The notes under the pieces are model-generated. The model did no database searches, was not told the origin of the DNA, and worked only from the letters and a program-made list of their open reading frames with translations. Positions 12,123-64,000 of a stretch of 64,000 nt of DNA are shown here, piece by piece (within the stretch, counting starts at the first letter, position 1; every line of letters starts with the position of its first letter). This stretch comes from Takakia lepidozioides. Lineage: Eukaryota; Plantae; Bryophyta. The translations under genes were made by a program, and so were the position numbers. The stretch is taken from the NCBI GenBank assembly GCA_030704615.1, contig CM060733.1, positions 57,102,001 through 57,166,000 on the forward strand, in the 5' to 3' direction.

Positions 12123-12153
12123 CCTTTTTTTGGAAAGTATGGCCCTTCCATTG

Positions 12154-14790: not shown

Positions 14791-15290
14791 NNNNNNNNNN
14801 NNNNNNNNNNNNNNNNNNNNNNNNNNNNNNNNNNNNNNNNNNNNNNNNNNNNNNNNNNNNNNNNNNNNNNNNNNNNNNNNNNNNNNNNNNNNNNNNNNNN
14901 NNNNNNNNNNNNNNNNNNNNNNNNNNNNNNNNNNNNNNNNNNNNNNNNNNNNNNNNNNNNNNNNNNNNNNNNNNNNNNNNNNNNNNNNNNNNNNNNNNNN
15001 NNNNNNNNNNNNNNNNNNNNNNNNNNNNNNNNNNNNNNNNNNNNNNNNNNNNNNNNNNNNNNNNNNNNNNNNNNNNNNNNNNNNNNNNNNNNNNNNNNNN
15101 NNNNNNNNNNNNNNNNNNNNNNNNNNNNNNNNNNNNNNNNNNNNNNNNNNNNNNNNNNNNNNNNNNNNNNNNNNNNNNNNNNNNNNNNNNNNNNNNNNNN
15201 NNNNNNNNNNNNNNNNNNNNNNNNNNNNNNNNNNNNNNNNNNNNNNNNNNNNNNNNNNNNNNNNNNNNNNNNNNNNNNNNNNNNNNNNNN
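14791..15290. other. Assembly gap (500 N)
   Basis: Run of n. Confidence 1.
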
Positions 15291-24606: not shown

Positions 24607-24954
24607 TCAACAGTACATGATGGTCAGTACTCTCAGGAAATGGTGGATGGTCTGAGTAGCTACACAGATCAATGAATGAATGCTCCCACATTTTGCATAC
24701 ATGTCCACGAGGGCATTGTTCAGAATCACATCTGGTACAATTCCAGCTTTGGCGATGCAACCATGCACCTCTTTGCCCTTTTCCAGGGCTGCCAGGCTTG
24801 CACATGCACTGCAAACGCACACAAACGTGATGTGGTCGGGCTTCCCCCCTTTCCCCATCATTTGCTCATAGGTCTCCAAGGCCTCCATCCCGCACCCCTG
24901 TTGTGCATATCCTGCAAGCATGGCATTCCAACACAACAAATCTCGTTCAGCCAT
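24607..24954 (-). pseudogene. PLS-class PPR fragment
   Basis: RDLLCWNAMLAGYAQQG...PDHITFVCVCSACASLAALEKGKEVH...NALVDMYAKCGS. Confidence 0.85.
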
Positions 24955-25924: not shown

Positions 25925-28676
25925 GGAGTGCTAATAAGCCCAAAAGCAATGGCCAGCCTTTCACTGTGGCGGTAGACTGCATGTTCCTTCGTTTGCTGAT
26001 CCACATAACGCAAAACAAGGCGTGTGTCAGGCAGGTATCCTGCCTCCTTCATCTTCCTAGTCAATTTTACCAACTCAGCATAGATCTCCTCCGTTTGTGG
26101 GTGTGATCTATCTTCTACAATGAAGGTATGTATCCAACTTTTTACCTCAATCTAGCTTCACGCTGTCTCCTTTTTCACACCCCTCCTCCATCGTTTTCTT
26201 ACTTTTGTTACATCATCCCACCTGCCAGCTAAAGCATAGACATTTGAAAGGAGCACATGCACTGCAGCATTTTTTGTTTCCAACTTCCAGACACATTCTG
26301 CGAAATGTTCTGCTAGCTCCACATTACCATGGATTCTGCAGGCACCAAGCAAGGCCCCCAACACTGAAGCCCCTGGTTCAAATGGAATTCTGTTCATAAA
26401 GTCCTTTGCCTGATCCAAGAGCCCAGCCCGGCCAAGAAGGTCTACCATGCAACCATAGTGCTTTTCTGTTGGTATGATGCAGTGATCTCTAGTCATAGAA
26501 AGGAAGTAATGATGGCCTTCATCCACTAGACCCACATGGCTGCATGCAAAGAGAACACCAATGAAGGTGATGCTGTCTGGCTTCACCCCTTCCCGTTGCA
26601 TCTGTTCAAAAAGTTGGAGCGCATCCTTGCCATGCCCATTCTGAGCACAACCCGTGATCATCGCAGTCCATGAGACTGTGCTATGCTCAAGAATATTGTC
26701 AAACACCCCCTTTGCATCTCGCAGACTCCCACACTTGGCATACATGTCAATCAGAGCAGTCCCCACACAGACATCTGATTCAGATCCAGATTTGAGGATA
26801 TTGTCATGAACCTTCTTGCCCTCCTCCAGAGCTGCCAGGTGGCCGCATGCATTGAGGATGAGAATAAAAGTGACCTTGTTAGGCTTCACGCCTTCTAGTC
26901 GCATTTGACCAAACAATTCAAATGACTCAACACCAAGCCCATGCTCATCAGATCCTGCAATCATCGAGTTCCAAGAGATGATATCACGTTCAGGCATTTT
27001 CAAGAACACTTGGCGTGCATCCAGTAGGCTCCCGCACTTGCAATACATGCTGACAAGGGCGTTCCCCACTCGAACATCCGCCTCAAATCCAGCTTTGATG
27101 ATGGCTTCATGGACCCACTTGCCCTGTTCGAGAGCTACTTGAGTGGCACATGCATTGAGGATGCTGATGAAAGTGACCTTGTTGGGCTTCATGCCTTCCT
27201 GTTGCATTTGCTGAAAACGGTCGAATGCCTCTTCAACATGCCCGGTATGAGCAAGTCCTGCAATCATTGCATTCCATGAGACCACATTTCGTTGAGGCAT
27301 TTTGAAGAGCACTTGGCATGCATCCACCACACTCCCGCATTTGCAATACATGCTGACAAGGGCAGTCCCCACTTGGATGTCGGACTCAAATCCAGCTTTG
27401 ATGATGCCTGCATGAAGCCGCTTTCCCTGTGGCAGAGCTGCTGGGGTGGTACATGCCTTTAGGATGCAGATGAAAGTGACCTTGTCTGCCTTAATGCCCT
27501 CTCTTTGCATTTGCCGAAAAATTTCGAAAGCCTCCCCAACATGACCGTGCTGGGCAAATCCTGCAATAATCGCAGTCCACGAGATCACATCTCGGTTGCG
27601 AATTCCGTCAAACACTGGGCGCGCATCCCGCACACTCCCGCACTTGCAATACATGCTCACAAGGGCATTCCCCACTCGAATATCAGACTCAAATCCAGCT
27701 TCGATGATGTCCGCATGGACCCACCTACCTTGCTCCAGAGCTGCTGGGATGGTACATGCATTGAGGATGCTAACGAAAGTGCCCTTGTTGGGCGTCATGC
27801 CTTCTAGTTGCATTTCCCAAAAGAGTTCAAAGGCCTCTTCAAATTTCCCTTTCTGAACAAGTCCTGCAATCATCGCATTCCATGAGACAACATTTCGATT
27901 ACTCATTTTGAAGAACACTTCGCGCGCATTCACCACACTTCCGCACTTGCAGTACATGCTGATGAGGGCAGTCCCTAATCGGACATCTGCCTCAAATCGC
28001 GCTTTGATGATCCCCGCATGGAGCCGCCTTCCATGATCTAGCTCTGCTGGGGTCCCACATGCGTTCAGAATGCTTATGAACGTGATCTTATTTGCCTTCA
28101 CCCCTTCTCGTTGCATTTGTTCAAAGAGTGCAAATGCTCCTTCCCCAGCGCCTTGTTGGGCTAATCCTGCAATCATCACATTCCAGGAGATCACATTCCG
28201 TTGAGGCATTTTGTCGAACACTTGGCGCGCATCCACAACATTCCCACACTTCACGTACATGCTGACAAGGGTATTTCCCAAGAAGATATCAGGCTTGAAT
28301 CCACTTTTGATGATATGAGCATGGATTTCCTTGCCATCTGCAAGGGATTTCGTCTCAGCACACTCTTGCAACAGACAAGCACAGGTATCAGAATATGCTG
28401 GAAAGCCTTGTTCCTCCAGCAAATTCAAGATGTCCACAACCTTCTTGTATCGTCCGTCCTTGCACAATCTGCTTATATACCCAAGAGCTCCACAATTTTG
28501 GGCTACTTCCCCCCTCGTCTGTGCCTTCGCCCAGAAGTCGTGATGATGGTGGCCGTGGCAACAGTGATGACCTTACCCCGACACCGACACCCAACAAGCA
28601 ACTCGGTCTGACTGCTGCAGAATTGGAACTCCACCACCTTGCTTGGTAACAAAATGTGTCTGGAGACCATTGTCAT
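25925..28676 (-). pseudogene. PLS-E/E+/DYW pentatricopeptide repeat RNA-editing factor, disrupted at both ends
   Basis: The 769-aa ORF at 26158-28467 has six L-S-P-type triplets plus L2-S2-E1-E2. In frame beyond it: KKETA*S*IEV..HTFIVEDRSHPQTEEIY..MKEAGYLPDT..HSERLAIAFGLISTPP, after which the DYW domain breaks off at a poly-C run with no CxxCH. A transit-peptide-like N-terminus from the ATG at 28676 joins via a frameshift in a G run near 28510. Confidence 0.9.
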
Positions 28677-34256: not shown

Positions 34257-34563
34257 TGTTGGAAGTAATTAAACATATCTAGAAGACTAAGAGTCTTGAA
34301 GGCCAAAGGTTTAGAAGTCTAAGAGACTATCTTGTTTAACTCACTTTTGGAAGGTGAATGGCTAGAAGGTGGATGGTCACCATAGTGGAAGTGGAAGTGA
34401 CCAAGTAGGACTTTCTAGAGACCTTCTTGTACAAGCTCGGGCGTGAAGCCACTAGTCTAAGTGTAAGAGTATGATGGTGGCTTCTATGGTTGGGAGGAGA
34501 GCTTTAGTTTTAGCTTTAGTCTAAGACTTTAGTTCTTGTTTATGTTCTTGCTCAATTCTAACA
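34257..34563 (+). repeat. Copia 5' LTR
   Basis: Matches 38658-38964, with 3 substitutions seen. Confidence 0.95.
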
Positions 34564-34624: not shown

Positions 34625-37600
34625 ATGGCTGGAGCGTCATCTTCTAACAATCCTCCTTCTATGTCTATGACGAGTGCATTAGATGTGAGAGTGGAAGATC
34701 GATTCAATGGAGCTAACTATCAAACCTGGAAGTTTAGGATGGAAATGGTACTTCTAGACAAAGATCTATGGGGAGTGGTTGATGGATCAGTCCCAAGACC
34801 TGACACTATTGTTGGCCAAGCCATATGGGATAGGAAAGATCAGAAAGCAAGAGCTAGCATCATCACAAGCTTGAGAGACAATCAGTTGCATCTCATTATA
34901 AGTGCTAAGAATGCTAAGGATGTTTGGGACAAGCTAGCAAGCATATATGAGACGAAGGATGTCACATCGCAAGTGTATGCGACACAAAAGTTCTATGGTC
35001 TGAAGATGACCGAGTCAGACTCAGTTGAACAATACTTGAATTTGTTTTGTGTGTTGCGAGATCAACTAGTCTCTGTGGGAACTAATGTGACTGATGAACA
35101 CGTCGCAGTGGTGTTATTGGCAACCTTACCTGAATCCTATGATGGTTTTGTGGTGTCTCTAGCAGGACAAACCAACTTAACTATTGATGTTGTCATATGA
35201 CTTCTCCTCAAGGAGGAAACACGAAGAAAAGGTCAAGGTACGTCTACAGAGATAGACAGAGCTTTGTTCACAGGCAAGACTGGAGTAGTCTTGAATAGAA
35301 GACTCCCTTCACATATGTCTCAAAAGTCCCAGAGGTTTCAGAAATCTCAATCTAGCTCAAAGATCAAAAAGCCAAAGTAAGGTGCTTTTATTGCAAGAAA
35401 CTTGGTCACATGATCAAGGATTGTAGAAAGCGCATTGCAGATGAGCGCAGCAGAGATGGTCAAGGGAACATAGCTACTCATCAGAGGAACGTTATTCTAT
35501 TTGTTGTGTCTCTCTCAGCCACTACTAGACAGAAGCATGTGTGGTATGTTGATTCAGGAGCATCTCAACATATGAGTTCAGAGAGAGAGCATTTATTATC
35601 CTATAGATCTCTTTCACCTACACAATATGTTCTTTTGGGAGATGATAGCAAGCATGTCATTAGTGGGGAAGGCTCAGTCTCTCTTATGCTCAATGAAGGG
35701 GAAACCATAGAGGTGAAAAATGTCCTATATGTCTCTACTTTAACAAAGAACCTGCTGTCGGTAAGGCAAATTGTTGCAAAGGAATACAGAGTGGTATTCC
35801 AAGATGAGAGTTGTACTATCACAGATAGCTCAGGAGCTGTGGTAGCAAAAGTTATTCTTGATAATCGCTTGTATAGATTACAACATCATGTCTTTAGTGC
35901 TCTTACCACATTTTCACCACAGTTGGGATCTACATATGTTATGTCAGAAATAGAGTTGTGGCATAGAAGGTTAGGTCATGTGAGCATTAAGAAGTTGAGA
36001 CAGATGCAACTCTCAAGCCATCTTGTGGAAGGACTACCATTGAAGGAGATGAGCGATATGCGTCTATGCAAAGGTTGCTTGGAAGGGAAGCAACATCGAG
36101 GTCAATTTCCTAAGGATGGTGGACGAAGAGCCACAAATATATTAGAGATTGTACATTCTGATGTGTGCGGGCCAATGCAAACCACATCACTTGGAAGAGC
36201 AAGGTACTTTGTGACATTCATTGATGATTTGTCAAGGAGGATTGTGGTGAATCTCCTAAGGCAGAAAAGTCAAGTGCTAGAGAAATTCAAGGAGTTCAAA
36301 GTACTTGAAGAAAAACAAACTGGAAAGCCTCTTAAGATTTTGAGATCTGACAATGGTGGTGAGTACATCTCAAAGGCTTTCAATCAGTTTTGTCAAGAGA
36401 ATTGAATAGCTCGACAGCTTACTGTTCCATATACACCTAAGCATAATGGTGTAGCTGAGCGGATGAATAGATCACTACAAGAATCTGCAAGGAGTATGTT
36501 GAAAGAAGTGAATCTTTCAAATCGTTTTTGGGCAGAAGCTGTTGGCACTGCAGCATATCTTCACAACAGAATACCTACCAAATCAGTGTTGGGAAAAACA
36601 CCAGAAGAGGTATGGAGTGGTCAGAAGCCTAGTGTGGCTCATTGTAGGATTTTTGGATGTCATGCATATGTCCATATCCCTACTCAGAAGCGAAAGAAAC
36701 TTGACTCCAAATCAAAAGGATGCATCTTCATTGGCTACACAGAAGGTGTGAAGGGATATAAGTTGTTCAATAAGACAACTAAGGCTGTCAAACACAGTAG
36801 GGACGTAGTGTTTGATGAAGGCTTCATACCCTCTTTGGTAGTGGGAGAAGATGACATGGGAATGAGCTTAGAGCCATTACACCATTTCCAAGAGGAGTCT
36901 TATGAGGAGCCAATACAAGAGATGGCTGAAGCAAATGATGGAGGTGTTCAATTTGATGGAGTTGATCAAGGAGTCGAAGTTGGTGAACCACTTGTTGATA
37001 TGGGAGATGAAGTTGAAGATGTGCCAATTCTAAGGAGATCTCAGCGAGAAAGAAAAGCTCATAGTAGGCTGATTACATCTATGAGGAAGCGATGCGCTCT
37101 CTAGACAAACTACAATGGGAAGAAACAATCAACTCAGAGTTGGATTCATTGATGCAAAATAAAGCATGGACACTCACTAAGTTAGCAATTGGTTGCAAGT
37201 GGATCTTCAAGTTGAAGTACAAAGCTGATGGATCTATTTACCGGTACAAAGCTCGTCTTGTAGCTAAAGGCTATGCACAAATTCAAGGAGTGGATTACAA
37301 TGAAACTTTCTCACCAATGGTGAAGATTTCTTCTATCAGAGTGTTGTTAGCTCTTGCAGCTCAACGTGATCACGAAGTTTATCAAATGGATGTTAAGACG
37401 ATATTTCGAATGGAGAACTACAAGAAGAGATCTACATGAGACAACCTGAAGGGTTTGTACAACGAGGAAGTGATATTGTGTGTAAGCTGCAAAAGAGTTT
37501 GTATGGACTCAAACAAAGTCCTCGAGCTTGGTATGCCAGGATCGATGCTTACCTCTTAAAGGCAAGATTTGAGCGAAGCATTGCTGACACAAACATCTAT

Positions 37601-38657: not shown

Positions 38658-38964
38658 TGTTGGAAGTAATTAAACATATCTAGAAGACTAAGAGTCTTGA
38701 AGGCCAAAGGTTTAAAAGTCTAAGAGACTATCTTGTTTAACTCACTTTTGGAAGGTGAATGGCTAGAAGGTGGATGGTCACCATAGTGGAAGTGGAAGTG
38801 ACCAAGTAGGACTTTCTAGAGACCTTCTTGCACAAGCTCGGGGGTGAAGCCACTAGTCTAAGTGTAAGAGTATGATGGTGGCTTCTATGGTTGGGAGGAG
38901 AGCTTTAGTTTTAGCTTTAGTCTAAGACTTTAGTTCTTGTTTATGTTCTTGCTCAATTCTAACA
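38658..38964 (+). repeat. Copia 3' LTR
   Basis: Preceded by the PPT and followed by TSD AAAAC. Confidence 0.95.
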
Positions 38965-39619: not shown

Positions 39620-40330
39620 GCTAACCAGATTGATATTAAATAGATTGAACTGATCCGTGCAGACGTAGCTGCAGCCGCCTGCATCTCATTGTAGCAAAGG
39701 AGACGGGCAAATAGTGGTGGAGGGATGAGACACAGCGATGGGAGGGAAATGCTTAGAGTACTGTCATGTCCACCGCTGCTTTGACACTGCTTTGACAGCT
39801 CTGGTGTACCCTGAAAGTGTGCTCACCAGATTGATAATAATAGATTGAACTGATCTGTGTCGCTGCAGCAGCCTGCATCTCAATGGAGACGTGCAAATAG
39901 TGGTGGAGGGATGAGACACGTCGATGGGAGGGAAATGCTTAGAGTACTGTCATGTCCACGGCTGCTTTGACAGCTCTGGTGTAGCCTGAAAGTTTGCTCA
40001 CCAGATTGATATTAATAGATTGAACTGATCCGTGTCGTTGCAGCCGCCTGCATCTCAATGGAGACGTGCAATGGTGGAGGGATGAGACACGTCGATGGGA
40101 GGGAAATGCTTAGAGTACTGTCATTTCCACAGCTGCTTTGACAGCTCTGGTGTAGCCTGAAAGTGTGCTCACCAGATTGATATTAATAGATTGAACTGAT
40201 CTGTGTCGCTACAGCCGCCTGCATCTCAAAGGAGACGTGCAAATAGTGGTGGAGGGATGAGACACGGCGATGGTGCTTAGAGTACTGTCATGTCCACCGC
40301 TGCTTTTGAAAGCTCTGTTGTAGCCTGCAG
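39620..40330. repeat. Tandem array, 4 units of ~170-200 bp
   Basis: Unit ctcaccagattgatattaatagattgaactgat...ggagggatgagacacgtcgatgggagggaaatgcttagagtactgtcatgtccac...tagcctgaaagt. Confidence 0.9.
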
Positions 40331-43079
40331 GTCTGCGGCACCGACCAAGATGGTGACGTTCGGCAGAGCCACGATCAGCACCGCTGGTTTGTCGGTTAGC
40401 TGCTCGGTACTTGCTCATAGCACAATTCGCCATCGAATCCGCATATGCGAAGTTTCCCAGTCTTGCTCGGCTTCAGTTTCTGTTGGAATGGTAATTACAT
40501 ATCCTTAAAAGAAATCATCTGAATGAGCTTAAGATATATACCGTACAGAGATATGTAAGTTTGTTTTCAATGTGCAGTAAAGTAAGAATCAATGGGACTC
40601 ACATCCTGAGCCCCCTACAAAATCTGTGATATTTATGAATCTTAAGATAAATATGGAGAGTTCTACTTAAGATTAATAGCATCCATCGATTAAATTTGTT
40701 TTGAATAGCAATTGAGGTAAAGTGCAAACAAAATCTGTGTGTTCCTCATTGCTCAGGCTGCCAGCTCCCTGCCTTCTGTTTAATGGGCATCTAAAATATT
40801 TAGCACATGTTCCATGCACTGAGATCGAAAGAGGTTCTGGTTCCAGCAACTGCCTTATAAGGTACAGTTATTCACATCATAGAGGAGGGGCCATGAAGAA
40901 GCCAAAATGCCTAATTTGATTTCCCGTACAACAACGTTAACCTTAAGGTTCCTCATATAAGTTAAGAAGGATGTTAAAAAATATATTTTGCTCCAGACAG
41001 TGTCTTATTATAATTACTGGTCTAAAGATAGAATATGGGGTCCAACTAGCTAAAACTGGTAAGTTGGTCACAAACTAAATTAAATGAAGTAGAACAGGAA
41101 GGTTAGTAGTTTCTCCTGTAGCTAGTCACAGAGTGCCAGCTTCTCTGTCCCCATATAAGTTGATCTCTCGTTGAGGACACCGGAAGTGAGTGGGAGAAGG
41201 GAGGGGGCGCGTTCCACCAGGTGCGCACATGTCATGACTTGCCTGCATGACCAGCAGCTCTTCTCGCGGCTCTTTGATTTCAAGGAAGAAGGGAGAATAC
41301 TCAATTGAACGGTGTGCAGTGCTGATGACGTAGGGCGCACAGCCCGTATGACGAGTTCTTATCGCTCATGGACTTTAAGGAAGAAGGGAGACGGTTAAAC
41401 CACACAGCCACTGTCTCTAAATGATGCTTAGTTTTCCATAAATGCTTTCCTTGTTGATGGTTGTGTGGCTCAATCAATAGCTTGTAGTCCCTTTTGTCAA
41501 GGATCGCGAGCGCCTTTCTGGAGATTATGAATTCCCCGGACAACTTATAAGACTCTTATAAGTTGTCGCTGGAAATACGTAGTCTCCAGAAAGGAGCATA
41601 TTGACCCGGACAGATGAGGGACAGACCGGCTAATGTGTGGGTTTTGTGGGGGCGGTATTGATGGCGGGTTTGAATTAACTCTAGACTTGTCCACACTCTC
41701 ACAGGCTCAGTTTAGATACGTACAAGAATGTTATAGATCTAAATGAAAATGAATGATATGAGTGAAATCACATGCATGCTTATCGGAGCCACACTACATT
41801 TGCTTATCTTGTTCTAAAGATGTCACCGGTGGATCGATATTATCCCATTCATTTTCGTGTGACAGGGATATCCACTGAATTAGAGGGACATTTCAGTATA
41901 TTGAGGAGCGAGTCCCGATGCTAATCACTAGGAAAGCTATCCAGGTGCAGAAATTAGTTTGCTGGATGTTGAGGGTGTTGTGTGCACCGGTAGTGGACTC
42001 CAGATGAGGTTTAATGATGAGATTCGTCATCTCAGTGCAGCTTGAACGTCCTTACTCCCCTGACCTGTTCATTTCTAGCAAGTGAAGGGGCAGGTCTTCT
42101 AGTCTTGTTTGTAGAATCTCCTCTGCACAGCTTGTAAGCCTCATCAGATTGTGGAGAGTCCTGAGGCTTCCTGCAGGCCTAACAGTGACGACAACCACTT
42201 AATTAAGTAAGACACCTTAAGACGACAACCACCTTAAGCCTCCTGGCTCTGGCACATATACGCAGCTGGTGCTCTCTCCGCTGAGGATGGAATCCTGGGT
42301 ACGTCCATCGGTAATAAAACTCCCCATCCTACCTCTTTTGCTCATCGGTCCCGCTTTATGTCCCTGGATCTGTATGTGTTATATGTCACTCTGCTGGTCT
42401 GCTCTCCTCTGCCTGTCTTCATTCCGGCTGGTCTCCTCTTCTAATTTATTGTAGTGTCTTCCCTCGGGCCACAATAATTAAACTCTCAATCCTAGTACTA
42501 CCTATTTTTCTCCTACATCTCTCTCTATTTGTCCCTAGATCTGTATGTGTATGTAAGTATGCTCTTCCTCTGCCACCTTGCTCAATCCTGTTTATCTATA
42601 TGGATCAGTGAATTTGAGAAACTGATTGAACATCTCATGGTAGGTAAAGTTCACCCATCTACATTAATGGTGGAAGATGAAGAAAAAATGACTGACAGTA
42701 GGGAGCAGGGTACGTTCCCTCTTCCAGAACGCCACCGCCGCCTCACGTGTACACCACGACTACTTATGATTTGAGGGCACCCATTGATGACAAGGCTGAG
42801 GATGAAGATCTGCTGGCAGAGGAACCAGGCCATGCAGAAATGTGGAGAGCCAATTTGGAGATCAGCCCTGAGGATGAAGATCAGCTACTGGCAGAAAATG
42901 GAGAGGAGCTGGCAGCTAAGCCCAGAGATCATTGAGGCTAGCACTGAGGCTGCCACCCTGTTGGGACGAGAACCACCCCTTCTGGTAGGCAGTGGCACAC
43001 ACATGCATCCGAAATTCCGAAGTTACTTCTTTGGCTCATCGATCCAAGGATCCGTTTGTGTACATGCCGGTCTCCTTAG

Positions 43080-44719: not shown

Positions 44720-47700
44720 ACTGGACATCTAGCTCACCTCAATATTCTGCACAAAGTAATTAAAATAGACATGTATCTAGACAATATCCAAGAAAAATGC
44801 ATGCAACTTTTGGACCAAAAAGTTAGACATCTACGTACCAAGAACAAATTTTCAGAGTTTCTTCTAAATCTACACACATTGGAAATGTAGCTCACTTCTG
44901 TCTCTTTCAATTTGTACACAATTATAGTCATCCAGCTCACCAGATTACGATTAAATTAGCTGAACTGATTCGTGCCCGATCCGTGCTGACGTCGCTCCAT
45001 CGGCATGCATCTCGTTGTAGCCAAGGAGACCTGCAAATAGTGGTATAGAGATGAGACACGTCGATAGGATGGAGATGTTTAGATCGAGTAGTGTCATGTC
45101 CACCGCTGCTTTGAGAGCTCTGGTAGCCAGCTGCAAGTTTGTGCACAACTGAGATGGCTACGTTCGCTATGCTGAGCCACTATATATATGTCAGCGCTAG
45201 TTTGTGCAACGTTTCCGTCTACAGATGCAGATACCTACATCACTCAGTGAACTCCTTGTGTATCTCGCTTCAGGTACCTAAGGCTATGCGCACTGCAAAT
45301 CTTGGCAATTTCTTCCAATCTACAAACAGTACCGGACATCTAGCTAGTACACCTCAGTCTCTTCCAATCTGCAAACATGATGGACCTCAGATCAACTTAT
45401 TAGTTGAATATCACCTGGTGCTTTTTACACCGTGCGGATGTTGCTCTCGCCCGTTCATCTGGAAAATATCTGAGGAAAACGCAAGGAAAATGCAAATTAT
45501 AGAGGCTCTGGAAGACACAATTTTCGAGCAAAAAGGGTAGTTCCTTCCAATCTACATGCAAAAAGGGTAGTTTCTTCCAATCTAGCCTGAACGTTTGCTC
45601 ACCAGATTGATATTAATAGATTGAACTGATCTGTGCAGACGTCGCTGCAGCCGCCTGCATCTCAAAGGAGACGTGTAAATAGTGGTGGAGGGATGAGACA
45701 CGTCGATGGGAGGGAGACGCCTAGAGTACTGTCATGTCCACCCGCTGCCTTGACAGCTCTGGTGTAGCCTGAAAGTTTGCTCACCAGATTGATATTAATA
45801 GATTGAACTGATCTGTGTCGCTGCAGCCGCCTGCATCTCAAAGGAGACGTGCAATAGTGGTGGAGGGATGAGACACGTCGATGGGAGGGAAATGCTTAGA
45901 GTACTGTCATGTCCACAGCTGCTTTGACAGCTCTGGTGTAGCCTGAAAGTTTGCTCACCAGATTGATATTAATAGATAGAACTGATCTGTGCAGACGTCG
46001 CTGCAGCCGCCTGCATCTCAAAGGAGACGTGAAAATAGTGGTGGAGGGATGAGACACGTCGATGGGAGGGAAATGCTTAGAGTACTGTCATTTCCACCAC
46101 TGCTTTGACAGCTCTGTTGTAGCCTGTAAGTTTGCGTACAACGACACACCGACCAAGATGGCGACGTTCGCTTTGCTGAGCCACGATCAGCAGCGGCTGG
46201 TTTGTTCGTTGTAGCTGCCCAGTAGCTGCTCACCACATGTTCTCCATCGAATAGCTGCATCGAATCTGCATAGGCGAAGTTCCCCGTCTTGCTCGGCTGC
46301 AGAATGGTCAATGGGCTTGATGTGGATCAATCCAACCGTTTTGTTGTTGTTGTTTTGTTTTGTTGCAAGTTCAGTAGTGAAAGCAACTAATTACATATCC
46401 TTCAAAAGAAAGTATTTGAATGAGCTTAAGATATATACCGTACAACACCAGCTGTAAGTTTGTTTTCAATGTGCAGTAAAAAGGATCCACCCTGAGTGGG
46501 GCTCACATCCTGAGTCCCACTACAAAATCTATGATATTATTTACATTTACTTTAATATTTCCAAACTGTTTTAGTTTGCTGAGCCATGATCAGCGCTGGT
46601 TTGTTGATTGTGTGATGTTTACATCTGTATCCCAGCACAGTTGTTTAATGTAAAGGACACTGGAATCAAACTTAGCCTCAACTTAGCACAATGCACGTGT
46701 GTTCCTTGCTCATTGCCGTTTGTATCAGAAGCCAGGATCTTCCCTTCGTTCTAGCTTGTTTATGAAGAATTCAAGTTGTGTGGTGTAATGTAACCCATAA
46801 ATTTATCATGAGTGCAGATTGGCAGACTAATTAGTGCTGATCAACCTCTACCACTGCGCCAAGATTATGAAACCCTCCGGACTAATTTAGCACAGGAAGT
46901 TACTGCAATCAAAAGCATGTTGAGATTGAAAGAGGTTCCAGTCAGCAACTGCCTTCAGAAGTTGGCCTTTACCTACACGCAGCATCACAGAGGATTGGCC
47001 ATGAAGAAGCCAAAAAGCCTAATTTTCTTTCCTGCAGATTACCTTAACAGCCCAGAAATTGTGGACTCTTGTGAAGCAAGAGTAACGGATGGTGTCACTT
47101 GAACCCCAAGGGCTACTGGTTATGTTACTTGGAACTTAACCTCATACAAGTTAACATGGAGATTAAGTCCACCATGTGTCTTTATATAATTACATGGTTC
47201 CAATGTTCTCTCATAGAAATGTTACTATGTGGGTTTCATGGCTTGGTATAAAACCAAATAAAAAAGATTTACGAAGTTGGTCACAAAATGGAGCAGAAGT
47301 ACAAGAAGGTTAGTAGACAGGCAAAACCTGCTGTACATTTTCCTTTGTGATTTTTTTGGGGCACTTTGAAGTAGAATTTACCCACTAGAGGCAGGAGCAT
47401 GGAACCCGAACCCTTGGTTCCAGTATTTTGCCATATAGGCCAATTTGTTGAACATGTTCTTGTCCCTTCGGTGAGATATCATCTAGGGTTGAAATGGAGC
47501 CAGGTAGTCATAGGGTGGAACCAGATGTTCCACGGGATGACAGCCTAGTGGAACCATGATTTGATTTGAGTAGATTGAGCAGATTTTTATTTAGCGCGGA
47601 CATGAACTTCCACAAACTTCCTACCTAGAAAGTTTCTGTAGTCAGTGCCTTCTCTGCTCCCATCCTGCAGGGACAGGGGAATGAGTATAAGAGAGGGAGA

Positions 47701-51419: not shown

Positions 51420-51604
51420 CTCACGTCAATGACGTCACGTCAGTTTGCCGAAAAATCAGTAAAACATGAGTTAGGTGAAACATATGTCACGTAGGTGGAC
51501 ACGTTGTATTCCAAGCGACACCTTGGCAAGTGAATGAATTGTTTTATAAATTACTCCATCCGTCAATATTTGAGGTCATTTTTAAATCATTATTGTTAAA
51601 TTGG

Positions 51605-52190
51605 TGCGACCTCCAAATGGTGGTGGTCGCAGAATTTATCTTATTTTTTAATAGTTGCGACCACCAGCAGAGGGGTTGTCGCAGCATTTTTTGTTTTTTA
51701 AAAATAGATGCGACCACCAGCAGGGGTGGTCGCAATTTTTTTTTTCTTAAATAGTTGCGACCACCAACAGGGGTGGTCGCAATTTTTTTTTTCCTTAAAT
51801 AGTTGCGACCACTGCTACTGTTGGTCGCACAATTTTTATTTTATTTGTAATAGGTGCGACCACCATCAAAGGAGTGGTCGCAACATTTTTTTATTTTTTA
51901 ATATCTACGACCACCAGCATGGGGGTGGTCGCAACATTTTTCTGTTTTTTTAATAGGTGCGACCACCACCAGGGGGTGGTCGCAGCAATTTTTTTATTTT
52001 TTTTTTAAATAATCTTTGTGACCACGAGCATGGGGTGGTCGCAGCATTTTTTCTTTTTTTAATAGGTGCAACCACTAGCAGGGGGGTGGTCGCAGCAATT
52101 TTCTATTTTTTAATATCTGCAACCACCAGCATGAGGGTGGTCGCAGCAGTTTTTTTTTTAAAATAACATACGACCTGGAGCGGTCGCAGC
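51605..52190 (+). repeat. Hairpin array TGCGACCACC-n6/8-GGTGGTCGCA, 12 copies, ~51-bp period, T-rich spacers
   Basis: Copies start near 51605, 51656, 51709, 51756, 51804, 51855, 51906, 51958, 52017, 52067, 52118 and 52170. Confidence 0.9.
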
Positions 52191-55688: not shown

Positions 55689-58547
55689 CTAAGAAGTTGA
55701 ACTAGGGTCCTTCTTTAGCATAGCCCTAACCTCTAACTAGCTAAGGGAAGGTTGGTGGATCTCATAAGCCCCGGCGCATCCTAGATGCACGTTGTATATG
55801 AAGTACATGTGCTTACAAGGTAGATATGTTTGTTTTTTCTTCTTGACAGATAGCTCATCAAAGTCGGACAATCACAAGATGGAAACTGATCAATGTATAC
55901 ATTGTAAACCAATCCTGCTCTGGTAGATCCCTCTGTTTGTAGCTCGTAAATTCTCCCATAACCTGGCTGAGGCATGTTTCTGAATCCACGAACCTCAGCA
56001 ATAAGAGTCTTCGTTGACTCTTGGCGACTCAAGTGTCGAGGAGTCGGATCCCAACGCCGAATGCGCATCCCATAGCGTGTAGTGGGATATTTATCCACAG
56101 GAAGGACAACACCTTGATGAATATGTTGTTCCACTGGAAGTGGTCCCACAGGAAAGTGCGGATCAGGAACGTTGGGAGGATGGACTAGTCGAAAACCTGC
56201 AAGGGTCAAGTTGTCCACCTCTTCTTGTGTAAGGTTGGTTCCAACCTTCACAGGCCACACGTTAGGTATACCCGGTTTTCCCAAGCAATAGGATGGCACG
56301 GTCCCTCCAACACACGACAAAACATCTGTGGGGCAAAACCAAAAAACTTGCAGTTTTGGTTCTTTCATGTTCGGTGCTAGTAACTTGCCAGTGAAGCAAG
56401 GTGCAGGACTTCCTTTACCTTTCCTGATGAGCGCTTTGCATTTATCCTTGGAAACTCCAACCAAGGCAGAACAACGAACCATGGAAGCAGGACCTGTCCG
56501 CTGAATCCTGAACAATGCATCGGAAAAGTCTTGTGTCTCTCTCACTGGATTTCCCCATTGCATTGGCTGAGGAGGGATAGCAACATGTGGATTTGTCTCA
56601 CAGAAAGTCGAAGAACCAGAAGAGAGCCACCAAGCCCGAATTGCAATGTATGTGGTTGTAGCATCCTCCAAGGTAGCACTATCTTTCCATTCATAACAGA
56701 GCTGAGTGTGCCTTTCACAGAAGTCCTCCAAGATATAGTCGTTGGTGTGTCTTCGGAGGCTTTCAGCCCAATGATATAAACATGTTCTTTCTTTACCTTC
56801 CATTGGGACATTGGGATCAGATCCATAAACCCTTCGAACAGCAGCCCAATTCGCTCTTGTTGCATCCGCCATGAAGCCAACAAAATTTGGTTTGTTCAAA
56901 CCAGCAAGTTTTGCTTGTTCATTGATCATCTCCCAGAATAACACCTGAGCATCTGCATCCTGTGTTTTCATATCGCAAATGGCAATGGTCATCATTCGCT
57001 TGACATATGGTTCATAGACATGACACGCAAGAGTTGTCCAATCCTTGATGCGTTTGACATGGTCAAATACTACCCAACTTGTGCGTAGATCCCCCTCACT
57101 CATGCGACGCACAAGATCAACACCACTCCCGGGACCAGCAACAGACATCTTGAAAACATGGGGGAGATGAGAAGTATGCTGGCATGGAAGGAGATTGTTG
57201 TGAATGAAATGGTATGTACTCAGACGCTTCAACTCCAATATGGACATGATGGAATTGATACGTGCAGATGCGACCTTGTTTTTCACATTGGGGCTACAAA
57301 CATGGGCAAACTCTTCAAGAATATCTTCCAAAGCCTCTCCCTCAAGACGTACTGTCTCTGTGCCATCAGCCACAAGAACTCGATCAATCAAGAACTTCTG
57401 GGCCATTGACAAGGAAATAGCTCCCGGGGTCGACCATGGCTTCATCTTAACGTGCTCTTGAATCATGCTTGATGCATTTTCCGCAGCCTCTCTATTCTCG
57501 CCCTTGGCACATGGAGGGTTATGAAACCCAACGTGAACTGCAACACGTGTATATGTTGGAAGGGAACTTGTGACATAGTACATTCTTGCCCCACAATGCG
57601 CCTCACAGAAAGGTCTTGCTTTGCAGAAACTACACTTGAACTGGTTGAATGGAACTTGGGCTCCTGCAATGAACACCTTGTCTGCATTGCCTTCCCAATA
57701 GCGGTCATTCCGTTCTCCTTCTTTCTTGAAGAAGGGGCAAGTGCTGCTTTGACATATGAGCTTTCCAACACAAAGAACCTTACTGCATTTCACATGATCT
57801 GGAACACCAGACATATTGTAGGTATTGGTCTTGCACCAAGGATGACCATCAAACTTGTGGTCCATGCCTTGGAGGGACTGTGAACCACGGTCCGTACGTA
57901 GTTTGACCACGGGGGGCCTTTTGATCCATTCCTCCGAGCAGTGGCCAAGATACTCAAAATGGACAACACACCAGAAGGAAATGCAGATGTAGCCTCCTCT
58001 GCTAGTCGTGGAGATGAAGATAAACCCCTCGCAGTTTCGCAACAATCAGACATGGTGTTGTCCAATGGAGTTTTCCGAGGCTTCATGTCGTGAAGCAAGA
58101 CCGTATGAGCAGATGAGGAAGGTTGAGATCCACAAAATACACTCTTAGAAACCTCAACACAATCGGAATTATGAGACCCCAAGCTCGCCGAATCTGCAAC
58201 CTCCTCCTTCAATTTACAACTCCCATTTGTTGCAGCTTGATCGTTTTTTCTTGCAATAGAAGTGTTCCTCTCATCATGTGACTGTGTATAGCTCGTACCT
58301 GTGACACGGTACTTGGAGAAAGTGTCTGGAAACAACTCCCATTGCTTTTGGCCGTCATTGAAACTGGAAGCAACACTGTGGAGGCATCATCATCTCCATC
58401 ATCCTCCAAAAAAACTGAACCCGGAACAAGTTTGAATCTATTGCATAACCAAGGTTCTGGGATAATGCACTTGTTTCCATTGCAAGGATAACGAACCACT
58501 TTTGCATCAGGTGGACATGAAAGCAATGCATATTTTGGTGTAGACAT
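55689..58547 (-). pseudogene. MULE-like transposase with GCM/WRKY-like N-terminal zinc finger and C-terminal SWIM finger (copy 2)
   Basis: 754-aa ORF: C-rich ICQSSTCPFF..CSFCK..CGARMYY..HVGFH, VVFDHVKR (D1), GFMADATRANW (D2), CLYHW (MULE CxxH). The SWIM finger PSCDCP...YLPCKH is recovered across a 1-nt frameshift. The 5' part is frameshifted back to the ATG at 58547. Confidence 0.8.
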
Positions 58548-59598
58548 TTGGCAATGCCCTCAAAGTTTGAGAGAAGATGCAAAATGAATGAAAGCGCACA
58601 TCTTGCAAGACCTTATGCAAATACATTAAATGGCTCACATTACTTATGTGTATCATCAATCCAGAATGTCCAAATTTTTTGAGGCATGTGCTCCATCCAT
58701 ATTATTCTCTGACAGAAACAACTAAATGGACTATCCCCTATTTTTAAGACGACGGCGCCGTTGTTAAGATCTTAGAATCCAATGTACTGCCTTCTTCTAA
58801 TGAGCATATGAAACATAAATGCTCTGCATGTTTCCATTTATTTTACAACCAATCGTTGATTAATCGTCCAACTATGAACTGACACACTAGACGGCACAAT
58901 TTATTTACAATCAAATCCCATGACATGTATGTTGATTTGTTCTTTGATTACTCATGTATGAGTAATGAGTACAAGTATTTGTGGCGACAATTGACTCTAA
59001 AACCAATAAATTGATTAAGACACCCTTAACAAAATATTTAGTTACTTTATCACTTACTTTATATTGTATTATGAAGGCGCCGCCACAAAGTAACATGTCA
59101 ATCGTACAACCATCTTCTGAGGATCCACGTGTAACCCATGTAGTCCAGAAAGCACTAACGCCAGAGTATATAAAAAAGGTTCACATTTCAGATTTGGCCT
59201 TTTTAAGGCCTTCGCCTTCGCCCAAGCCCCCCTTTCCCCCCGCTCTCCTTGGCGGGGGCAGGTTTGAACCCGCAACCTAGTGGAAAATACACCACAACTT
59301 TACCAACAAACCATGCTCTATTCAATGAAACAACCTCTATTTTTGTTAATAAACTGTTTCTATTCAGTTAAACTTGTTGCCATTACTACATGACTAACCC
59401 GGTATCATTACTACACTAACGTAGTCTAGTATACTTGCACATTATCCCTTGCCACTCCCCCAAACAAACACACACAAACTACACAAGCACTTAACACGTC
59501 TCTAGTCTCTACACCCTACTCCCGTTGCGAAGAGGAGACGGAGGCGCCGCATCTCGGCCTTATACTATACCACCCCGAGGCAACGAGTTGTTGCGGCG

Positions 59599-62500
59599 AT
59601 GGGGAGGAAGAAGGATTCCCGAGGGGGAGGCGTTGCTGGTGGTGGTGGTGGTGGTAGAGGCAAGCTGCGGACGGAGAAGGTAAGCTATAGTTTTGTTTTT
59701 TTTTCATGACCTGCACTTAGGCATATACGCCATCGCATAAGCCCCACCAAGCTGCTCCTAATCTAGCACCTCCGCCGGCACAGATGCCTAAGTCACTTCA
59801 ACTCTCACAAGTTTGCGAATCCACACATACACACAACCGTCTCCGCCGGCGGAGACAGCTCATTCCCCTTGGTTTTTTCTGATGCTTGGAAGGGCTGGGC
59901 TGCCACCTCCGCCGGCGCATACCGTTGGAGCTGGGATGCTCACATGTTTCAGGAAGTGCTCCTCTACTCCCATCCCGTTTATTTTTTTGCATGCTCATAC
60001 ATTGCTGATGCTCCGAGCGGGTTGGGCTGGCGTATCCGCCGGCGCATACCTGTGCAGCAGGGCTGCTCAAATGTTTTTTCCGCATGCTCAAAAGTTGCTG
60101 ATGCTCCGAGTGGGCTGCGCTGGCATATCCGCCGGCGCATACCCATTGAGTACATTCTTTTTTGCTCAGTTCATAGGTTTCAGGAACCTCCTGCGGCTTG
60201 GAGCTTGGTTTTTTTTGCATACTCCCTGTGTTACGGAAGCTCCAAAGCGCCAAGACTGCCACCTCTGTCAACGCAGACCCGTGCAGCAGGGCTGCTCACA
60301 TATTTCAGGAAGTTCTCCCCCCCCCCCCTTCCATCTCTTTTGTTTCTCCGCATTCTCATAAGTTGTTGATGCTCCGAGCGGGCTGGGCTGCCATATCCGC
60401 CGGCGCATACCCATTGAGCACAATCTTTTTTTGCTTAGCTCCTAGGTTTCAAGAACCTCATGCAAGCATCTCCGCCGGCAGAGATGCTTGGAGCTTGGTT
60501 TTTTGTTGTATATTCCTTGTGTTACGTAAGCTCCAAAGTGTCGAGGCTACCACCTCCGTCGGCGCAGACGCTTGGGGAACCTTCCCTATTTTGGTTGATC
60601 ACAGTATTCAAGTATCTCAAAGCTTCTACGTTGCCACCTCCACAACTCCACATGCTTCCATAGGCCTAGTTTGATCTTTCAAGGTGCTCCTATATGTTTG
60701 GCTACAACCTCCCTTCCATGGTATGCGCCGGCGCATATGCTTGGAGCTCCTTGAGCAAAAATTTCTTCAAGGGCCTCAAATCTTGTCAAATTTTGAGTTG
60801 GTTGCACATATGTGTCATATACGCCGGCGTAGGTGGTCGGAGGTCCTCTGTCGGGATGCTCAGGCCTGTATTCTGCTCCAAGTTGTAAGCTTTGAAAGAC
60901 AAGGATATTCATGGAATTAGTTGACTATCCAAATTCATTTGTTTTCTTCATGCAACCATGACACTGAGTTGCTCTTTTTACATATTATACATTCACACAT
61001 GTGCTCTTCTCATACACTGACATCTTGAACTGTTTTGGTCTATGGAATTAGGAAATTACTACTACAACTGAAGCTGTGGAGGCCGGGACGCTTGCAATCA
61101 TTATTGACGACATTGATGCAGGGAATTGGGGGGCAGATGAGTATGAAGAGGATACAACATCTAGTGATCCTCTTTCTCTAGATGCCAAACAGGCAATTAT
61201 TCTGGAAAAGAAACAAGATCTGAATGTAACTTTCAGGTCCCTCCTCATTGAGGATGGAGTTATGGACATTCCATTGTGTCGCATGATTTCTATGCAGGTT
61301 GTTAGGCCCGCCCTTGCCAACAACATCCTAAAGCTTAGAGGAGACTTCTATTCTGGATACCATCCAGGAGCAGCCGTGTTCTATGTTTCTGTTGAGGGGA
61401 TTGATGGATCTACTATAGATGTAGGTCCTGATATCATCTCTACATGGGATAGTCATTGGAAAACAGTCAATGATGAGTTTGAGAAGTATCTTGAGTCCAA
61501 GCCAAAGTTGCATCATCTTCGGGGGAAGATGTTTCATGTCTGGGATGGGAATCATAGGCTTCAAGCATGGTATCCCTATATCAATGAAGTTCATGGGGCC
61601 AACTTGTCAAGACATGTCTGTGTGACAAGTTGGGTGCTCAATGCGGACATTGAAAATCGTGGTTCCCTCAGGTCCATCATGGATGGAGTGAATGTGTGAG
61701 TTTCCTTTCTATTCTTCATTTACTTTCATGTTCAATGTTGTCATGTTCTTGCTCAATGGATGTACATATACACATCTTCTTTCTAATGATCATATTTTAT
61801 ATGTGCAGGGCAACAGAGAGGGCACATGTTACATCCAAATTTGTGCACTTGGTTTGCAAGGTCAATATGATTGGCCTTACACCTGTCTCTGAATGGAAGA
61901 ATGTATTGAGGAAAGAGCAATACGACGAATGCATCAAGAAAGCAGGAAAGACTTGGTATAACTTGACAGTCCATGCAATGACAGAGATTTTGTACAAGGT
62001 AACATCATGTCTTAACCAAGTTTCATTCTTTGCATCCATAGACAAGATTCACCTCTGGTTCATGTTATGAACTGTTTTGGTTCTTTTGGCAGCATGATAT
62101 CGTTGAGGCCCAACGCATGGCGGGGGAAGCTTACAAACTTGCTGAGGGACCAAAGAGTCAAGAGGGCCTTGAAGATACAATGAGACAGGCTGGATTGAAA
62201 GCAAGGGAGCAACACAAGAGTCAGCTTGTGAAGTTGCTTCCTATTGCTGATCCAACCCTTGGAGAGGGGTTTCTCCAAGAACTTAAACTGCATTGGTCAC
62301 GTGTAAAGGCAGGATCAGAGGAAATGACCCAAGAGAAAATGGTGAACATTGCTACCGCCCGGGTGGATCCTGAAGAAAAGGTGGAATGGCTACATATATG
62401 GAATGGAGACCAAACACTTCACAACCGTAATTTTTTTCCACCCGGGCCTATCAGTGGGCCAACACTTGATCCTTGGCTGAATAGAAGGACTTTTTGGTGG

Positions 62501-64000
62501 CAGGTACATATACAATCATTATCTTCTCAATGCAATTAATTCATTTTGTTGATGACACATTAACATAGTTATTTAACTGACTGTATTTTCTGGCAGCTTC
62601 GCAAGGTTGCCTTGGCTCAGTTTGCCTTGTACACCACTCAGCTTGGCCAATTTCATGTTGCCTTGGAGGAAGGAGAGAGTGAGAGTCTGGGAGACTACAT
62701 GGATACATGGAAGATGACTCATTTCAATGAGTTGTTTCATAGAGAGTTCTCATTGCCAAAGGGGCCATTCAGAGGCAATGATTGGGAACAACAAACAGGT
62801 GGGGAGAAGGTGGTGAGACGGATTTTATTCAAGTACCATCTTTCCATTGCATTGTACATGGATAGTGTATACACCTTGTAAGTCAAAAATGTCTATGCTT
62901 CAAGTATTTTTCTAGTACATTGGGAAATACATGTTTCTTAATGTGCTTGTTCAATTGTTGAACAGGTTGCATAAATATTTGTCTCCACAATAACTTTGAA
63001 TGTGTTTGTATTTTAGGTACATGAGATTTGTGCTTGTACCGAGTGATCGACTTAAGGCTGAGCCCAAGTTTCTGATGGCCTGGAAGTTTGGTGCTCAACA
63101 AGCTTCCATGTACACACCTGCAATTGAGGAAGATTGGGGTGTGGAACACCGGGAAGGGGGGGGTTGGTATTTGGATATGCCCAAGGGTACTATCCCCTAT
63201 GCAGAAATGGGACTTCATAAGGAATGTGTTCGCAGGCAGTCAGTGAGTGATGAAGGGGTCCTTGTTCTTGATCTGGAGCAAGCAGAACAGATTGCTACAC
63301 AGGCCGCTGACACTGTAGCCCAAGTGGTCCCTGCCGTTGTGGGTGTACCAAAACGCAAATCACGAAAAAGAAAAGGTGCGGATGTCAATGCAGGTGTGGC
63401 TTCTATTGCTGGTCCTATTGGTAGTTCTTCACATCCTTCAAATCAGTTGGTTGTAGTGCCTGCACCTGCTACTCGAGGAAACAAGCCAAAGGCAGGCGAA
63501 CATCCTTACAGTGCAGTGTCATTTTCTGGTGGTGCACCTAGCATGTATCGCATGAAGATCATGCCTACTCATTTCATTGATATGGTGGAGGTCTCAAGTA
63601 CATCTCCTGATGCGACCTTGAAAGAGCTCATGGAGTTCTTAAAAAATGTGAGTTTCCCCCAACAAACAAACTTGAATGTAAGGAATTCTTCAATGTTTTT
63701 ATATCGTCATCTCCGGCTATTGACTCCTACATTTTCTGTATGTTGTTTGCAGTTGCCAGGAACTTGGTCTAGTGTTGTGGATGGAAAAAGCGTGCTTGTG
63801 GCTGTGGACATGATCATCGTGGACTACCCGACAGAAATGCCTGTACAGGGCTGTTTGGATGGTGTACAGGTTCCTCCCTGGAATGCTTTTGATAAACGGT
63901 ATTGGGAGTATGCATTCTCCATTGCTAATGACCTGTTGGATGACAATGGATGCGTGGTGTTCTTGCAGGGCTCCGATGATTCCTTTGCATTGGAGCTCTT
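59599..64000 (+). CDS. ParB/Srx-like + beta-class amino-methyltransferase fusion gene (copy 2; reading frame intact as far as visible)
   Basis: Exons 59599-59679 (MGRKKDSRGGG..RTEK), 61052-61695, 61809-61998, 62093-62503, 62597-62877, 63017-63647 and 63753->64000 splice in frame with GT-AG introns and no stop. DGNHR lies at 61544 and VDMIIVDYPT at ~63804-63833. Confidence 0.8.
59770..60830. repeat. Intronic CCGCCGGCGCATACC repeats (copy 2)
   Basis: About 9 CGCCGGC cores between 59772 and 60829. Confidence 0.8.

Follow-up and report, generated by a model that had tools for sequence, protein, structure and literature searches.

The window analysed here is a stretch of 64,000 nucleotides from Takakia lepidozioides (contig CM060733.1, positions 57,102,001 to 57,166,000 of the forward strand), and it is land-plant nuclear DNA with a G+C content of 41-54%. 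Its right end carries two divergently oriented genes: a transposase on the minus strand, present as an open reading frame (ORF) of 754 aa at 55781-58045, and a multi-exon accessory gene on the plus strand, which runs from 61052 to the window edge. An array of short palindromes lies between the two. The same arrangement is found a second time further upstream; we refer to the upstream version as copy 1 and to the one at the right end as copy 2. The accessory gene appears to encode a ParB-like domain followed by an amino-methyltransferase domain, and we read the region as probably being part of a two-gene land-plant DNA transposon whose accessory protein recognises its own element.

In copy 2, six exons of the accessory gene can be followed on the plus strand. 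Exon A (61052-61695), defined by the splice model and by 472 homologues, contains the ParB/sulfiredoxin (Srx)-fold domain at about 61244-61693 with its invariant D-G-N-H-R motif. Exons B (61809-61998), C (62093-62503), D (62597-62877) and E (63017-63647) are open in frame and bordered by GT-AG introns. They encode a middle region of unassigned fold plus a low-complexity basic linker, and have no match in Pfam. Exon F (63753-64000) holds the first half of the methyltransferase domain, with VDMIIVDYPTEMPVQG at the position of motif IV, and ends at the window edge; a hidden Markov model (HMM) of the N-terminal half of this domain matches it at 3e-30. Every border of the six exons is AG/GT and the spliced product of 801 aa (801 codons) contains zero stops, so the plus-strand exons do splice in frame, as the initial annotation of this DNA had proposed. 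Exon A opens at a splice acceptor, without an ATG, and therefore at least one 5' exon is absent from the gene model.

The rest of the gene is seen in copy 1, also on the plus strand. Split ORFs and the alignment of the copies place its exons A to E at approximately 19060-19698, 19812-20001, 20096-20506, 20600-20880 and 21020-21651, respectively. Exon F (21757-22092) is the N-terminal methyltransferase half, with the motif IV position followed by a W-N ... D-N-G beta-strand region, while exon G (22207-22468) contains RSPAFMQVLLE, the helix of motif X, and ILDLTAGT, the opening half of motif I. The remainder of motif I and the next strand, STFIAARKSGRHVFGLEGD, are in exon H (22572-22791), and exon I (22901-23174) encodes an acidic C-terminal tail that is kept in the related locus L002; the end of the gene is uncertain, as the ORF continues to 23243. 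The accessory protein would then total about 1100 aa, 801 from copy 2 and about 280 from exons F-I of copy 1. A chimera of about 1120 aa had been proposed earlier by joining exons of the two copies. All motifs quoted for it (HVWDGNHRLQAW, VDMIIVDYP, GARDRSPAFMQVLLETCSLPGSRILDLTAGT and STFIAARKSGRHVFGLEGD) are present, but the joined frame crosses an in-frame TAA at 22351-22353 in exon G of copy 1.

A phase-1 intron divides motif I at the identical codon in every relative examined (L001, L008, L036, L049, L062, L067 and others). Most relatives have G|GN (Gly) as the split codon and some have A|GC (Ser); copy 1 of the window has T|GT (Cys), with the borders of the intron at 22466-22470 and 22570-22573.

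Self-comparison with blastn shows that 57426-64000 repeats 15297-22004 at 91-98% identity, with the copies 42 kb apart. The identity changes in steps, from 91.5% in the first 490 bp (57426-57916) to 95.7% in the next 2.2 kb and 98.4% in the last 3.9 kb. A scaffold gap of exactly 500 N (14791-15290) directly adjoins copy 1, and the 91% identity beside it may owe as much to assembly quality as to divergence. Copy 1 can be followed to about 23.2-23.3 kb; its other side ends at the gap, where a frameshifted, gap-truncated transposase remnant is found on the minus strand (15297-15933; blastn 91.5% to 57426-57916, with weak fragmented tblastn matches). Copy 2 runs past the window end, so the right boundary of the duplication cannot be placed.

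Copy 1 is clearly a pseudogene. Relative to copy 2, its exons A-E contain five exonic indels and two nonsense changes (19921 and 21139), in addition to the TAA in exon G. The substitution rate between the copies is 0.50% in exons and 0.55% in introns, with five synonymous versus seven non-synonymous changes, and we therefore conclude that the copies have diverged neutrally after a recent duplication. Read from copy 2 to copy 1, ten of the 12 exonic substitutions (19130-21639 versus 61123-63635), both nonsense changes included, are G>A or C>T, a bias that matches deamination of methylated cytosines in a silenced copy. The recurrence of the gene pair upstream, noted in the initial annotation, thus holds, with the qualification that the second copy is a pseudogene at an assembly gap. 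Both copies in the window are decaying: the accessory gene of copy 2 is intact to the window edge and the C-terminal zinc finger of its transposase looks damaged.

The 472 relatives of exon A, mostly short, exon-sized gene calls, were obtained by scanning 1.8 billion representative proteins in full with HMMER. Where a source is named, it is the fern Adiantum nelumboides or A. capillus-veneris, with the annotation 'hypothetical protein'. The motifs conserved in a 47-member alignment are I-P-L-C-R...V-R-P, F-Y-V, W...W...N..F-E and M-F-x-V-W-D-G-N-H-R-L-x-A-W. Within W-D-G-N-H-R, G166 and N167 are invariant in the 47 sequences and H168 and R169 nearly so, and the motif corresponds to the Gly-x-x-Arg type of the ParB superfamily at a strand-helix junction (GERR / GCHR / DGQHR). 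Searches of Pfam and PHROGs with every exon gave no match, the ParBc profile PF02195 included, and a search of the PDB sequences with the family HMM found no ParB. A match to ribosomal eL24 among the PDB sequences (E=0.007) covers a short W..W..N..F stretch only and was treated as chance. TIGR03187, the DGQHR domain, is the sole NCBIfam model matched by more than one member (three of the 47, weakly, best E 0.001); it represents a branch of the ParB superfamily.

Structure prediction gives a clearer picture. The exon A domain was modelled by AlphaFold2 from the 47-member alignment with a predicted local distance difference test score (pLDDT) of 86 and a predicted template modelling score (pTM) of 0.80. 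In a Foldseek search of the PDB, nearly all of about the first 40 ranks belong to the ParB/Srx superfamily, with probabilities to 0.97 and E-values of 0.04-1: sulfiredoxin, Noc, ParB, KorB, SbnI, PadC, Atu1540 and the pNOB8 ParB-N, the sole outsider being the DotY effector. Against the viral library BFVD (E 0.007-0.2), most of the top matches that have a name are phage or giant-virus proteins labelled ParB/Spo0J, ParB-like nuclease or DndB-like 'sulfur modification'; a few are named otherwise, and uncharacterised proteins stand among them. The Foldseek TM scores for the domain range from 0.24 to 0.61, with probabilities up to 0.97-1.0. The predicted model and its structural neighbours thus support a ParB/Srx fold for the N-terminal domain, as first read from the sequence motif.

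The region between the two genes contains a feature absent from the initial annotation, an array of palindromes that is conserved in position and family-specific in sequence. In copy 2, about ten sites of 16-22 bp with the core CGCCGGCG are spaced 66-270 bp apart at 59763-60831, for example GTCTCCGCCGGCGGAGAC at 59839-59856 and TATGCGCCGGCGCATA. The same sites are found in copy 1 at 17721-18739. The 8-mer CGCCGGCG occurs 16 times in the window versus 0.06 expected, and 13 of the 16 are inside the two arrays (seven in copy 2, six in copy 1); a scan with a degenerate 12-mer, with nine matches in the copy 1 array, agrees with these positions. Every other element examined has an array in the same place. 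L003 has nine CATATGCATCGATGCATATG-type sites with a 136-bp period, and L050 has TGAGCTCA four times versus 0.24 expected, plus TGAAGAAC...GTTCTTCA sites. In the fern locus L093 the sites are seven palindromes, each about 50 bp long with CCGCGCCGGCGCGG at its centre, and they have the core GCGCCGGCGC in common with the window; the fern locus L092 has about fifteen TGTGTGTGTCAACACACACACA-type sites. The central GCGCCGGCGC is shared by the palindromes of L093 (8085-9740) and the window (59839-60740), though the proteins are only about 30% identical; it may be a conserved recognition core or a coincidence. It is plausible that the palindromes are binding sites of the ParB domain in a divergent promoter region.

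The structural neighbours also allow a different role, in which the ParB-like domain would be a nuclease, an NTPase or a DndB-like DNA-modification sensor that aids transposition, instead of a sequence-specific tether, and the palindromes would be transposase or promoter sites. The neighbours include ParB-like nucleases, sulfiredoxin, which is an ATP-using enzyme, and DndB-like proteins, and the D-G-N-H-R motif resembles DGQHR. However, family-specific palindrome arrays lie beside the ParB gene in every element examined, as parS does with ParB, and we consider this role unlikely.

For the C-terminal domain, PF01555 at its gathering threshold matched neither the exons nor the full-length fern protein P0184 (832 aa), which holds the entire methyltransferase domain in one annotated product; the only Pfam result for P0184 is Methyltransf_23 at E=0.18. 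A tblastn search of the domain against phages gave chance matches only, and a region-restricted homology search with the C-terminal domain of P0184 returned P0184 itself alone; P0184 also had no relevant match among the PDB sequences. A family profile was built from P0184 and the window exons by iterative HMM searches of six-frame translations of 80 metagenome loci. Three parts were recovered: the N-terminal half around motif IV; motif X together with the part of motif I that precedes the conserved intron; and the segment behind that intron. In about 20 loci all three are found downstream of the ParB exon. For the 13-row family alignment the exons were joined per locus by script and no reference enzyme was used. 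The reference alignment comprised YhdJ of E. coli together with seven phage methyltransferases taken from annotated records, eight enzymes of the PF01555 type in all.

When the two alignments are compared with hhalign, 164 columns align in the motif order IV, X, I with a probability of 97.4% (P=9e-12). Controls with reversed or column-shuffled references stay at 1.8% or less (P 0.03-0.97). The family alignment without the ferns still reaches 95.5% (P=1.5e-8) and the window sequence alone 93% (P=3e-7), and the unrelated class-I methyltransferase PrmA gives 76.5% (P=2e-5). The placement is colinear: the D-x-P region falls on DPPY, the R-S-P..L-L-E helix on Q-K-P..L.E..I, and I-L-D-L-T-A-G-T / S-T..A...G-R-H..G-L-E on V-L-D-P-F-a-G-S-G-T-T..A...R-k-f-I-G-i-E. 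An earlier alignment, A4, compared with YhdJ alone, had placed motif IV correctly with a probability of only 9%. The profile comparison thus supports homology of the C-terminal domain to beta-class (PF01555-type) amino-methyltransferases, in the permuted order with motif IV before X and I, and the order proposed in the initial annotation stands. Homology and order rest on this profile test and not on structure, since the AlphaFold2 model is poor. A Foldseek search with that model ranks CcrM second and returns many METTL3 chains at E-values near 1, which is suggestive at most. The matches to ParBc and N6_N4_Mtase that had been expected were thus not obtained with Pfam, but the structure-based search for the first domain and hhalign for the second agree with the expectation.

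The catalytic motifs differ between the lineages. At the motif IV position the ferns have the near-canonical D-L-P-F-G-G, the closest relatives of the window D-I-P-E-N-L-P-V-P-G, and the window itself D-Y-P-T-E-M-P-V-Q-G. For motif I the ferns have E-F-G-C-G-T, while pseudogene copy 1 of the window has T-A-G-T-C, whose Cys is encoded by the split codon T|GT; the corresponding codon of most relatives is G|GT (Gly). Judged from these residues, methyltransferase activity is plausible for the fern proteins and doubtful in the window lineage.

It is a tentative possibility, which we take seriously without favouring it, that the methyltransferase-like domain is a pseudoenzyme in the window lineage. 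The protein would then be a ParB-type DNA-binding or bridging factor that regulates the divergent promoter, or assembles or pairs element DNA, and no mark other than 5-methylcytosine (5mC) would be written. The motif IV variants without the aromatic residue, D-Y-P-T / E-M-P-V in the window and N-L-P-V in the relatives, speak for this, as does motif I with T-A-G-T-C or A-S-T-G/S. So does the precedent of the DIRS1 retrotransposons, whose methyltransferase domains are published as inactive (PMC4738411). On the other hand, the length and order of the domain are conserved across the ferns and the window group, the fern members keep D-L-P-F and E-F-G-C-G-T, and some active methyltransferases are known to deviate from the canonical motif IV.

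The 754-aa ORF of copy 2 has 28 homologues with 35-44% identity, none with a precomputed Pfam domain, and the relatives align to 57916-56606 and 56590-55814 of the window. Read by eye, the protein has a Cys/His-rich N-terminal module, D-G-H-x-W-C-K-T ... C..C ... H.H, and a core, M-F-D-H ... F-M-A-D-S-A-Q-A-N-W-N-A-V-R ... C-x-F-H-W, with a D...D...C-x-x-H pattern. The C-terminus of the full-length relative P0151 shows a SWIM-like pattern by eye, C-D-C..19..C-K-H. In the window this is degenerate: CDC...NKH has lost the third zinc ligand, and the tail continues in another frame, with a stop where the relatives have Trp. The N-terminal part of about 200 residues in the relatives has no detectable counterpart in the window.

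The initial annotation called this transposase MULE-like (Mutator-like element). Transposases of this type resemble it in layout, with an N-terminal Cys/His zinc module, a D...D...C-x-x-H core and a C-terminal CxC...CxH finger, the last of these seen by pattern in P0151. However, none of 21 members of the window family matches the MULE (PF10551), Transposase_mut, DBD_Tnp_Mut, FAR1 or SWIM profiles at E<=1, and no long terminal inverted repeats (TIRs) or target site duplications (TSDs) of 8-11 bp were found. Searches of the PDB sequences with the transposase and its family profile returned nothing relevant. The resemblance is therefore one of architecture only. The transposase could also belong to one of the superfamilies that Pfam does not cover (PMC5751038), among them Sola1-3, Kolobok, Zator and Academ; a Sola1 assignment was considered by analogy with the precedent from Ectocarpus described below, which is a Sola1 element.

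In the window, the transposase ORF and the accessory gene are 3.0 kb apart, not about 1 kb as given earlier. Linkage was examined by tblastn of the transposase and the accessory protein against all fetched loci. Among 15 non-redundant informative loci, ten have the transposase upstream on the opposite strand, i.e., head-to-head (L001, L003, L004-6, L010, L036, L064/65, L067, the ferns L092 and L093, and the window). These include both fern loci examined and L001, a distant relative with 25% ParB identity. The idea that the two genes travel together is thus borne out. More than 20 paralogues of the accessory gene are found in one fern genome, and many metagenome contigs also carry homologues. 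We infer the mobility of the element from copy number, linkage and decay. In L002, the closest transposase-less relative, an exon-sized accessory piece lies on the opposite strand (11753-12001), a small inversion that again points to decay. The description of the module as 'domesticated' does not fit an accessory gene that is multicopy, transposon-linked and, in the window, decaying.

The same data bear on a further alternative, that there is no transposon here and that the window shows a host gene pair in a local segmental duplication, or one locus assembled twice. The window contains two copies only, 42 kb apart, one of them abutting the gap of 500 N, and no TIR or TSD was found, as such an explanation would have it. 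Against it stand the hundreds of homologues, with the fern paralogues and metagenome contigs just mentioned, the linkage of the same transposase family in divergent lineages, and the neutral divergence between the copies with its nonsense mutations. We regard it as very improbable.

Whether the family had been described was left as a question in the initial annotation, and equivalent cargo has in fact been published for Ectocarpus Sola1-1_Ec32, for red-algal Plavaka elements and for green algae. The sections of Dinatale et al. 2025 (PMC12477816) on Sola1-1_Ec32 describe a 21.5 kb element with an opposite-strand gene for a 1104-aa protein that has ParB-like and N4C/N6A methyltransferase domains. 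By this description the two are alike in having a single protein of about 1100 aa with a ParB-like and an N4C/N6A-type methyltransferase domain, encoded on the strand opposite to the transposase, and those sections also propose that it binds and modifies its own element. In contrast to the window, the host is a brown alga, the transposase is classified as Sola1, whereas that of the window is unclassified, and the sections on the element report no palindrome array.

In red algae, the ParB-like PAG3 of Plavaka elements has tandem inverted-repeat arrays alongside, for which self-binding has been proposed (Petroll et al. 2025, 10.1101/2025.02.11.637652). PAG2/PAG3 resemble the window family as transposon cargo with a PF01555 methyltransferase and a ParB-like domain, with inverted-repeat arrays beside the ParB-like gene, and as cargo that moves between transposon superfamilies. 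They differ in being separate proteins (methyltransferase with SET; ParB with 2-oxoglutarate oxygenase), in their CACTA/Plavaka carrier, and in that InterPro finds PF01555 directly in them, whereas Pfam is blind to the window family. The passages concerned in these two papers (PMC12477816; 10.1101/2025.02.11.637652) also describe ParB-methyltransferase cargo in green algae. Dam-type enzymes fused to ParB and a helix-turn-helix (HTH) are known from chlorophytes and chytrids, and ParB-Tls-derived enzymes from haptophytes (Iyer et al. 2016, PMC4738411). The ParB-Tls loci of phages and plasmids (PMC4738411) are likewise carried by mobile elements and pair a ParB/Srx module with an amino-methyltransferase in which motif IV precedes motif I, the permuted order, but they are prokaryotic and intron-less, with canonical DPPY and FxGxG motifs. 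VANC of the eudicot Mutator element VANDAL is, as summarised in 10.1101/2025.02.11.637652, an element-encoded protein proposed to bind the repeated motifs of its own element and alter the epigenetic state of that element. It is unrelated to the accessory protein, with no ParB or methyltransferase fold, and it causes loss of 5mC and writes no mark. Full-text literature searches gave no report of such cargo in land plants, an absence that cannot be proven in that way. The window element is a land-plant member of this recently recognised kind of transposon cargo.

A prokaryotic derivation of the module had also been proposed. Pattern scans of IMG/VR and of one genome per species of 185,579 prokaryotes gave no relatives; the near-exact peptide patterns used reach close relatives only. 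The proposal thus depends on which organisms carry these folds, i.e., on the known distribution of ParB and PF01555 domains (PMC4738411), and not on a donor. Any prokaryotic or phage origin of the accessory gene would, if real, be ancient, because the gene has many introns, one of them conserved within motif I.

We suggest that the region is part of a two-gene transposon. The first arm encodes a DDE-type transposase of a family outside Pfam coverage, and the second, divergently transcribed, an accessory protein of some 1100 aa in all, in which a ParB/sulfiredoxin-fold domain at the N-terminus is combined with a beta-class (PF01555-like) amino-methyltransferase domain at the C-terminus. The ParB-like part could recognise the element's own palindrome array, about ten sites in the 3 kb between the genes, like bacterial ParB on parS, and this recognition would tether the methyltransferase domain to the bidirectional control region of the element. 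The tethered domain might then mark or shield the element, for anti-silencing, self-recognition or copy-number control. In the window lineage, with its non-canonical catalytic and S-adenosylmethionine (SAM)-loop motifs, the domain may be a binding module and not an enzyme; the fern relatives with D-L-P-F and G-x-G-T motifs would be better candidates for activity.

Several observations weigh against this picture. No part of either gene is matched by Pfam, PHROGs or PDB sequence searches, and the Foldseek E-values for the ParB-like domain are modest (0.007-1). The AlphaFold2 model of the methyltransferase domain is poor (pLDDT 59), because MAFFT superimposes fragments from the C-terminal exons on the N-terminal half, so that no deep alignment in the correct register could be supplied. 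Outside the ferns, the (D/N/S)-P-P-(Y/F/W) position lacks its aromatic residue in either register, the glycines of motif I are partly replaced (A-S-T-G or A-S-I-S in the relatives), and within the window the C-terminal methyltransferase half is known solely from pseudogene copy 1. No TIRs or TSDs were found between candidate ends in the window, nor around the fern loci. No transposase lies within 8-10 kb in five of the 15 loci (L002, L023, L050/52, L055 and L059/60); together with the ten linked loci, this matches a family of autonomous elements accompanied by derivatives that have decayed or lack the transposase. That the accessory protein binds the palindromes is pure inference. With all this taken into account, we hold a two-gene land-plant transposon with a self-recognising ParB-methyltransferase accessory protein to be probable, though well short of certain.

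A stronger version of the same idea can be speculated upon, namely that in ferns and in the lineage of the window these land-plant transposons carry a self-targeting epigenetic writer, in which the ParB-like domain reads the palindrome array and the fused methyltransferase deposits N6-methyladenine (6mA) or N4-methylcytosine (4mC) there. We think this improbable. If true, the element would carry a private non-5mC mark that the C5-methylation silencing machinery of the host does not write, and the palindrome sites would co-evolve with the protein, as parS does with ParB.

Elsewhere in the window, a PLS-class pentatricopeptide repeat (PPR) gene with an E motif (26158-28467, minus strand, 769-aa ORF) has a 303-bp periodicity that accounts for the window repeat families D1 and D2, and a PPR fragment (24607-24954, minus strand) lies just downstream of copy 1. 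A copia-type ORF with GAG-pre-integrase and integrase domains (35410-36405) is bracketed by direct repeats at 34257-34563 and 38658-38964 (307 bp, 99% identical, 4.4 kb apart), and looks like a young long terminal repeat (LTR) retrotransposon or a fragment of one. Satellite arrays at 39620-40476 and 45583-46302 have a unit of about 171-175 bp and are 84-90% alike between the sites, with further shared and inverted segments around them (33.4-33.9 kb versus 44.3-44.7 kb). Two arrays with a 51-bp period (51585-52159 and 11610-12136), 72-83% alike and in inverted orientation, each lie a few kb outside one copy, on its transposase side, and may be subterminal repeats of the element or part of its surroundings. 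A scan of the window for sigma-70 promoters and terminators has no bearing on eukaryotic DNA.

It is rare for a transposon to encode a protein that binds and modifies the element itself, and the textbook case in land plants is that of the VANDAL anti-silencing factors. ParB-methyltransferase cargo has been noted only recently, in algal giant transposons, with no functional study. New here is that the ParB-methyltransferase module is present in ferns and in the window plant, too diverged for Pfam, and that the palindrome array beside it keeps its position while its sequence is specific to each family. The palindrome array and the ParB-like protein form a concrete, testable protein-site pair, and the canonical catalytic motifs of the ferns and the degenerate ones of the window lineage provide a natural contrast. 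The finding also bears on annotation: such multi-exon genes now carry the label 'hypothetical protein' in fern genomes. Should the fern proteins be active, land plants would have a source of DNA methylation other than 5mC that is tied to mobile DNA.

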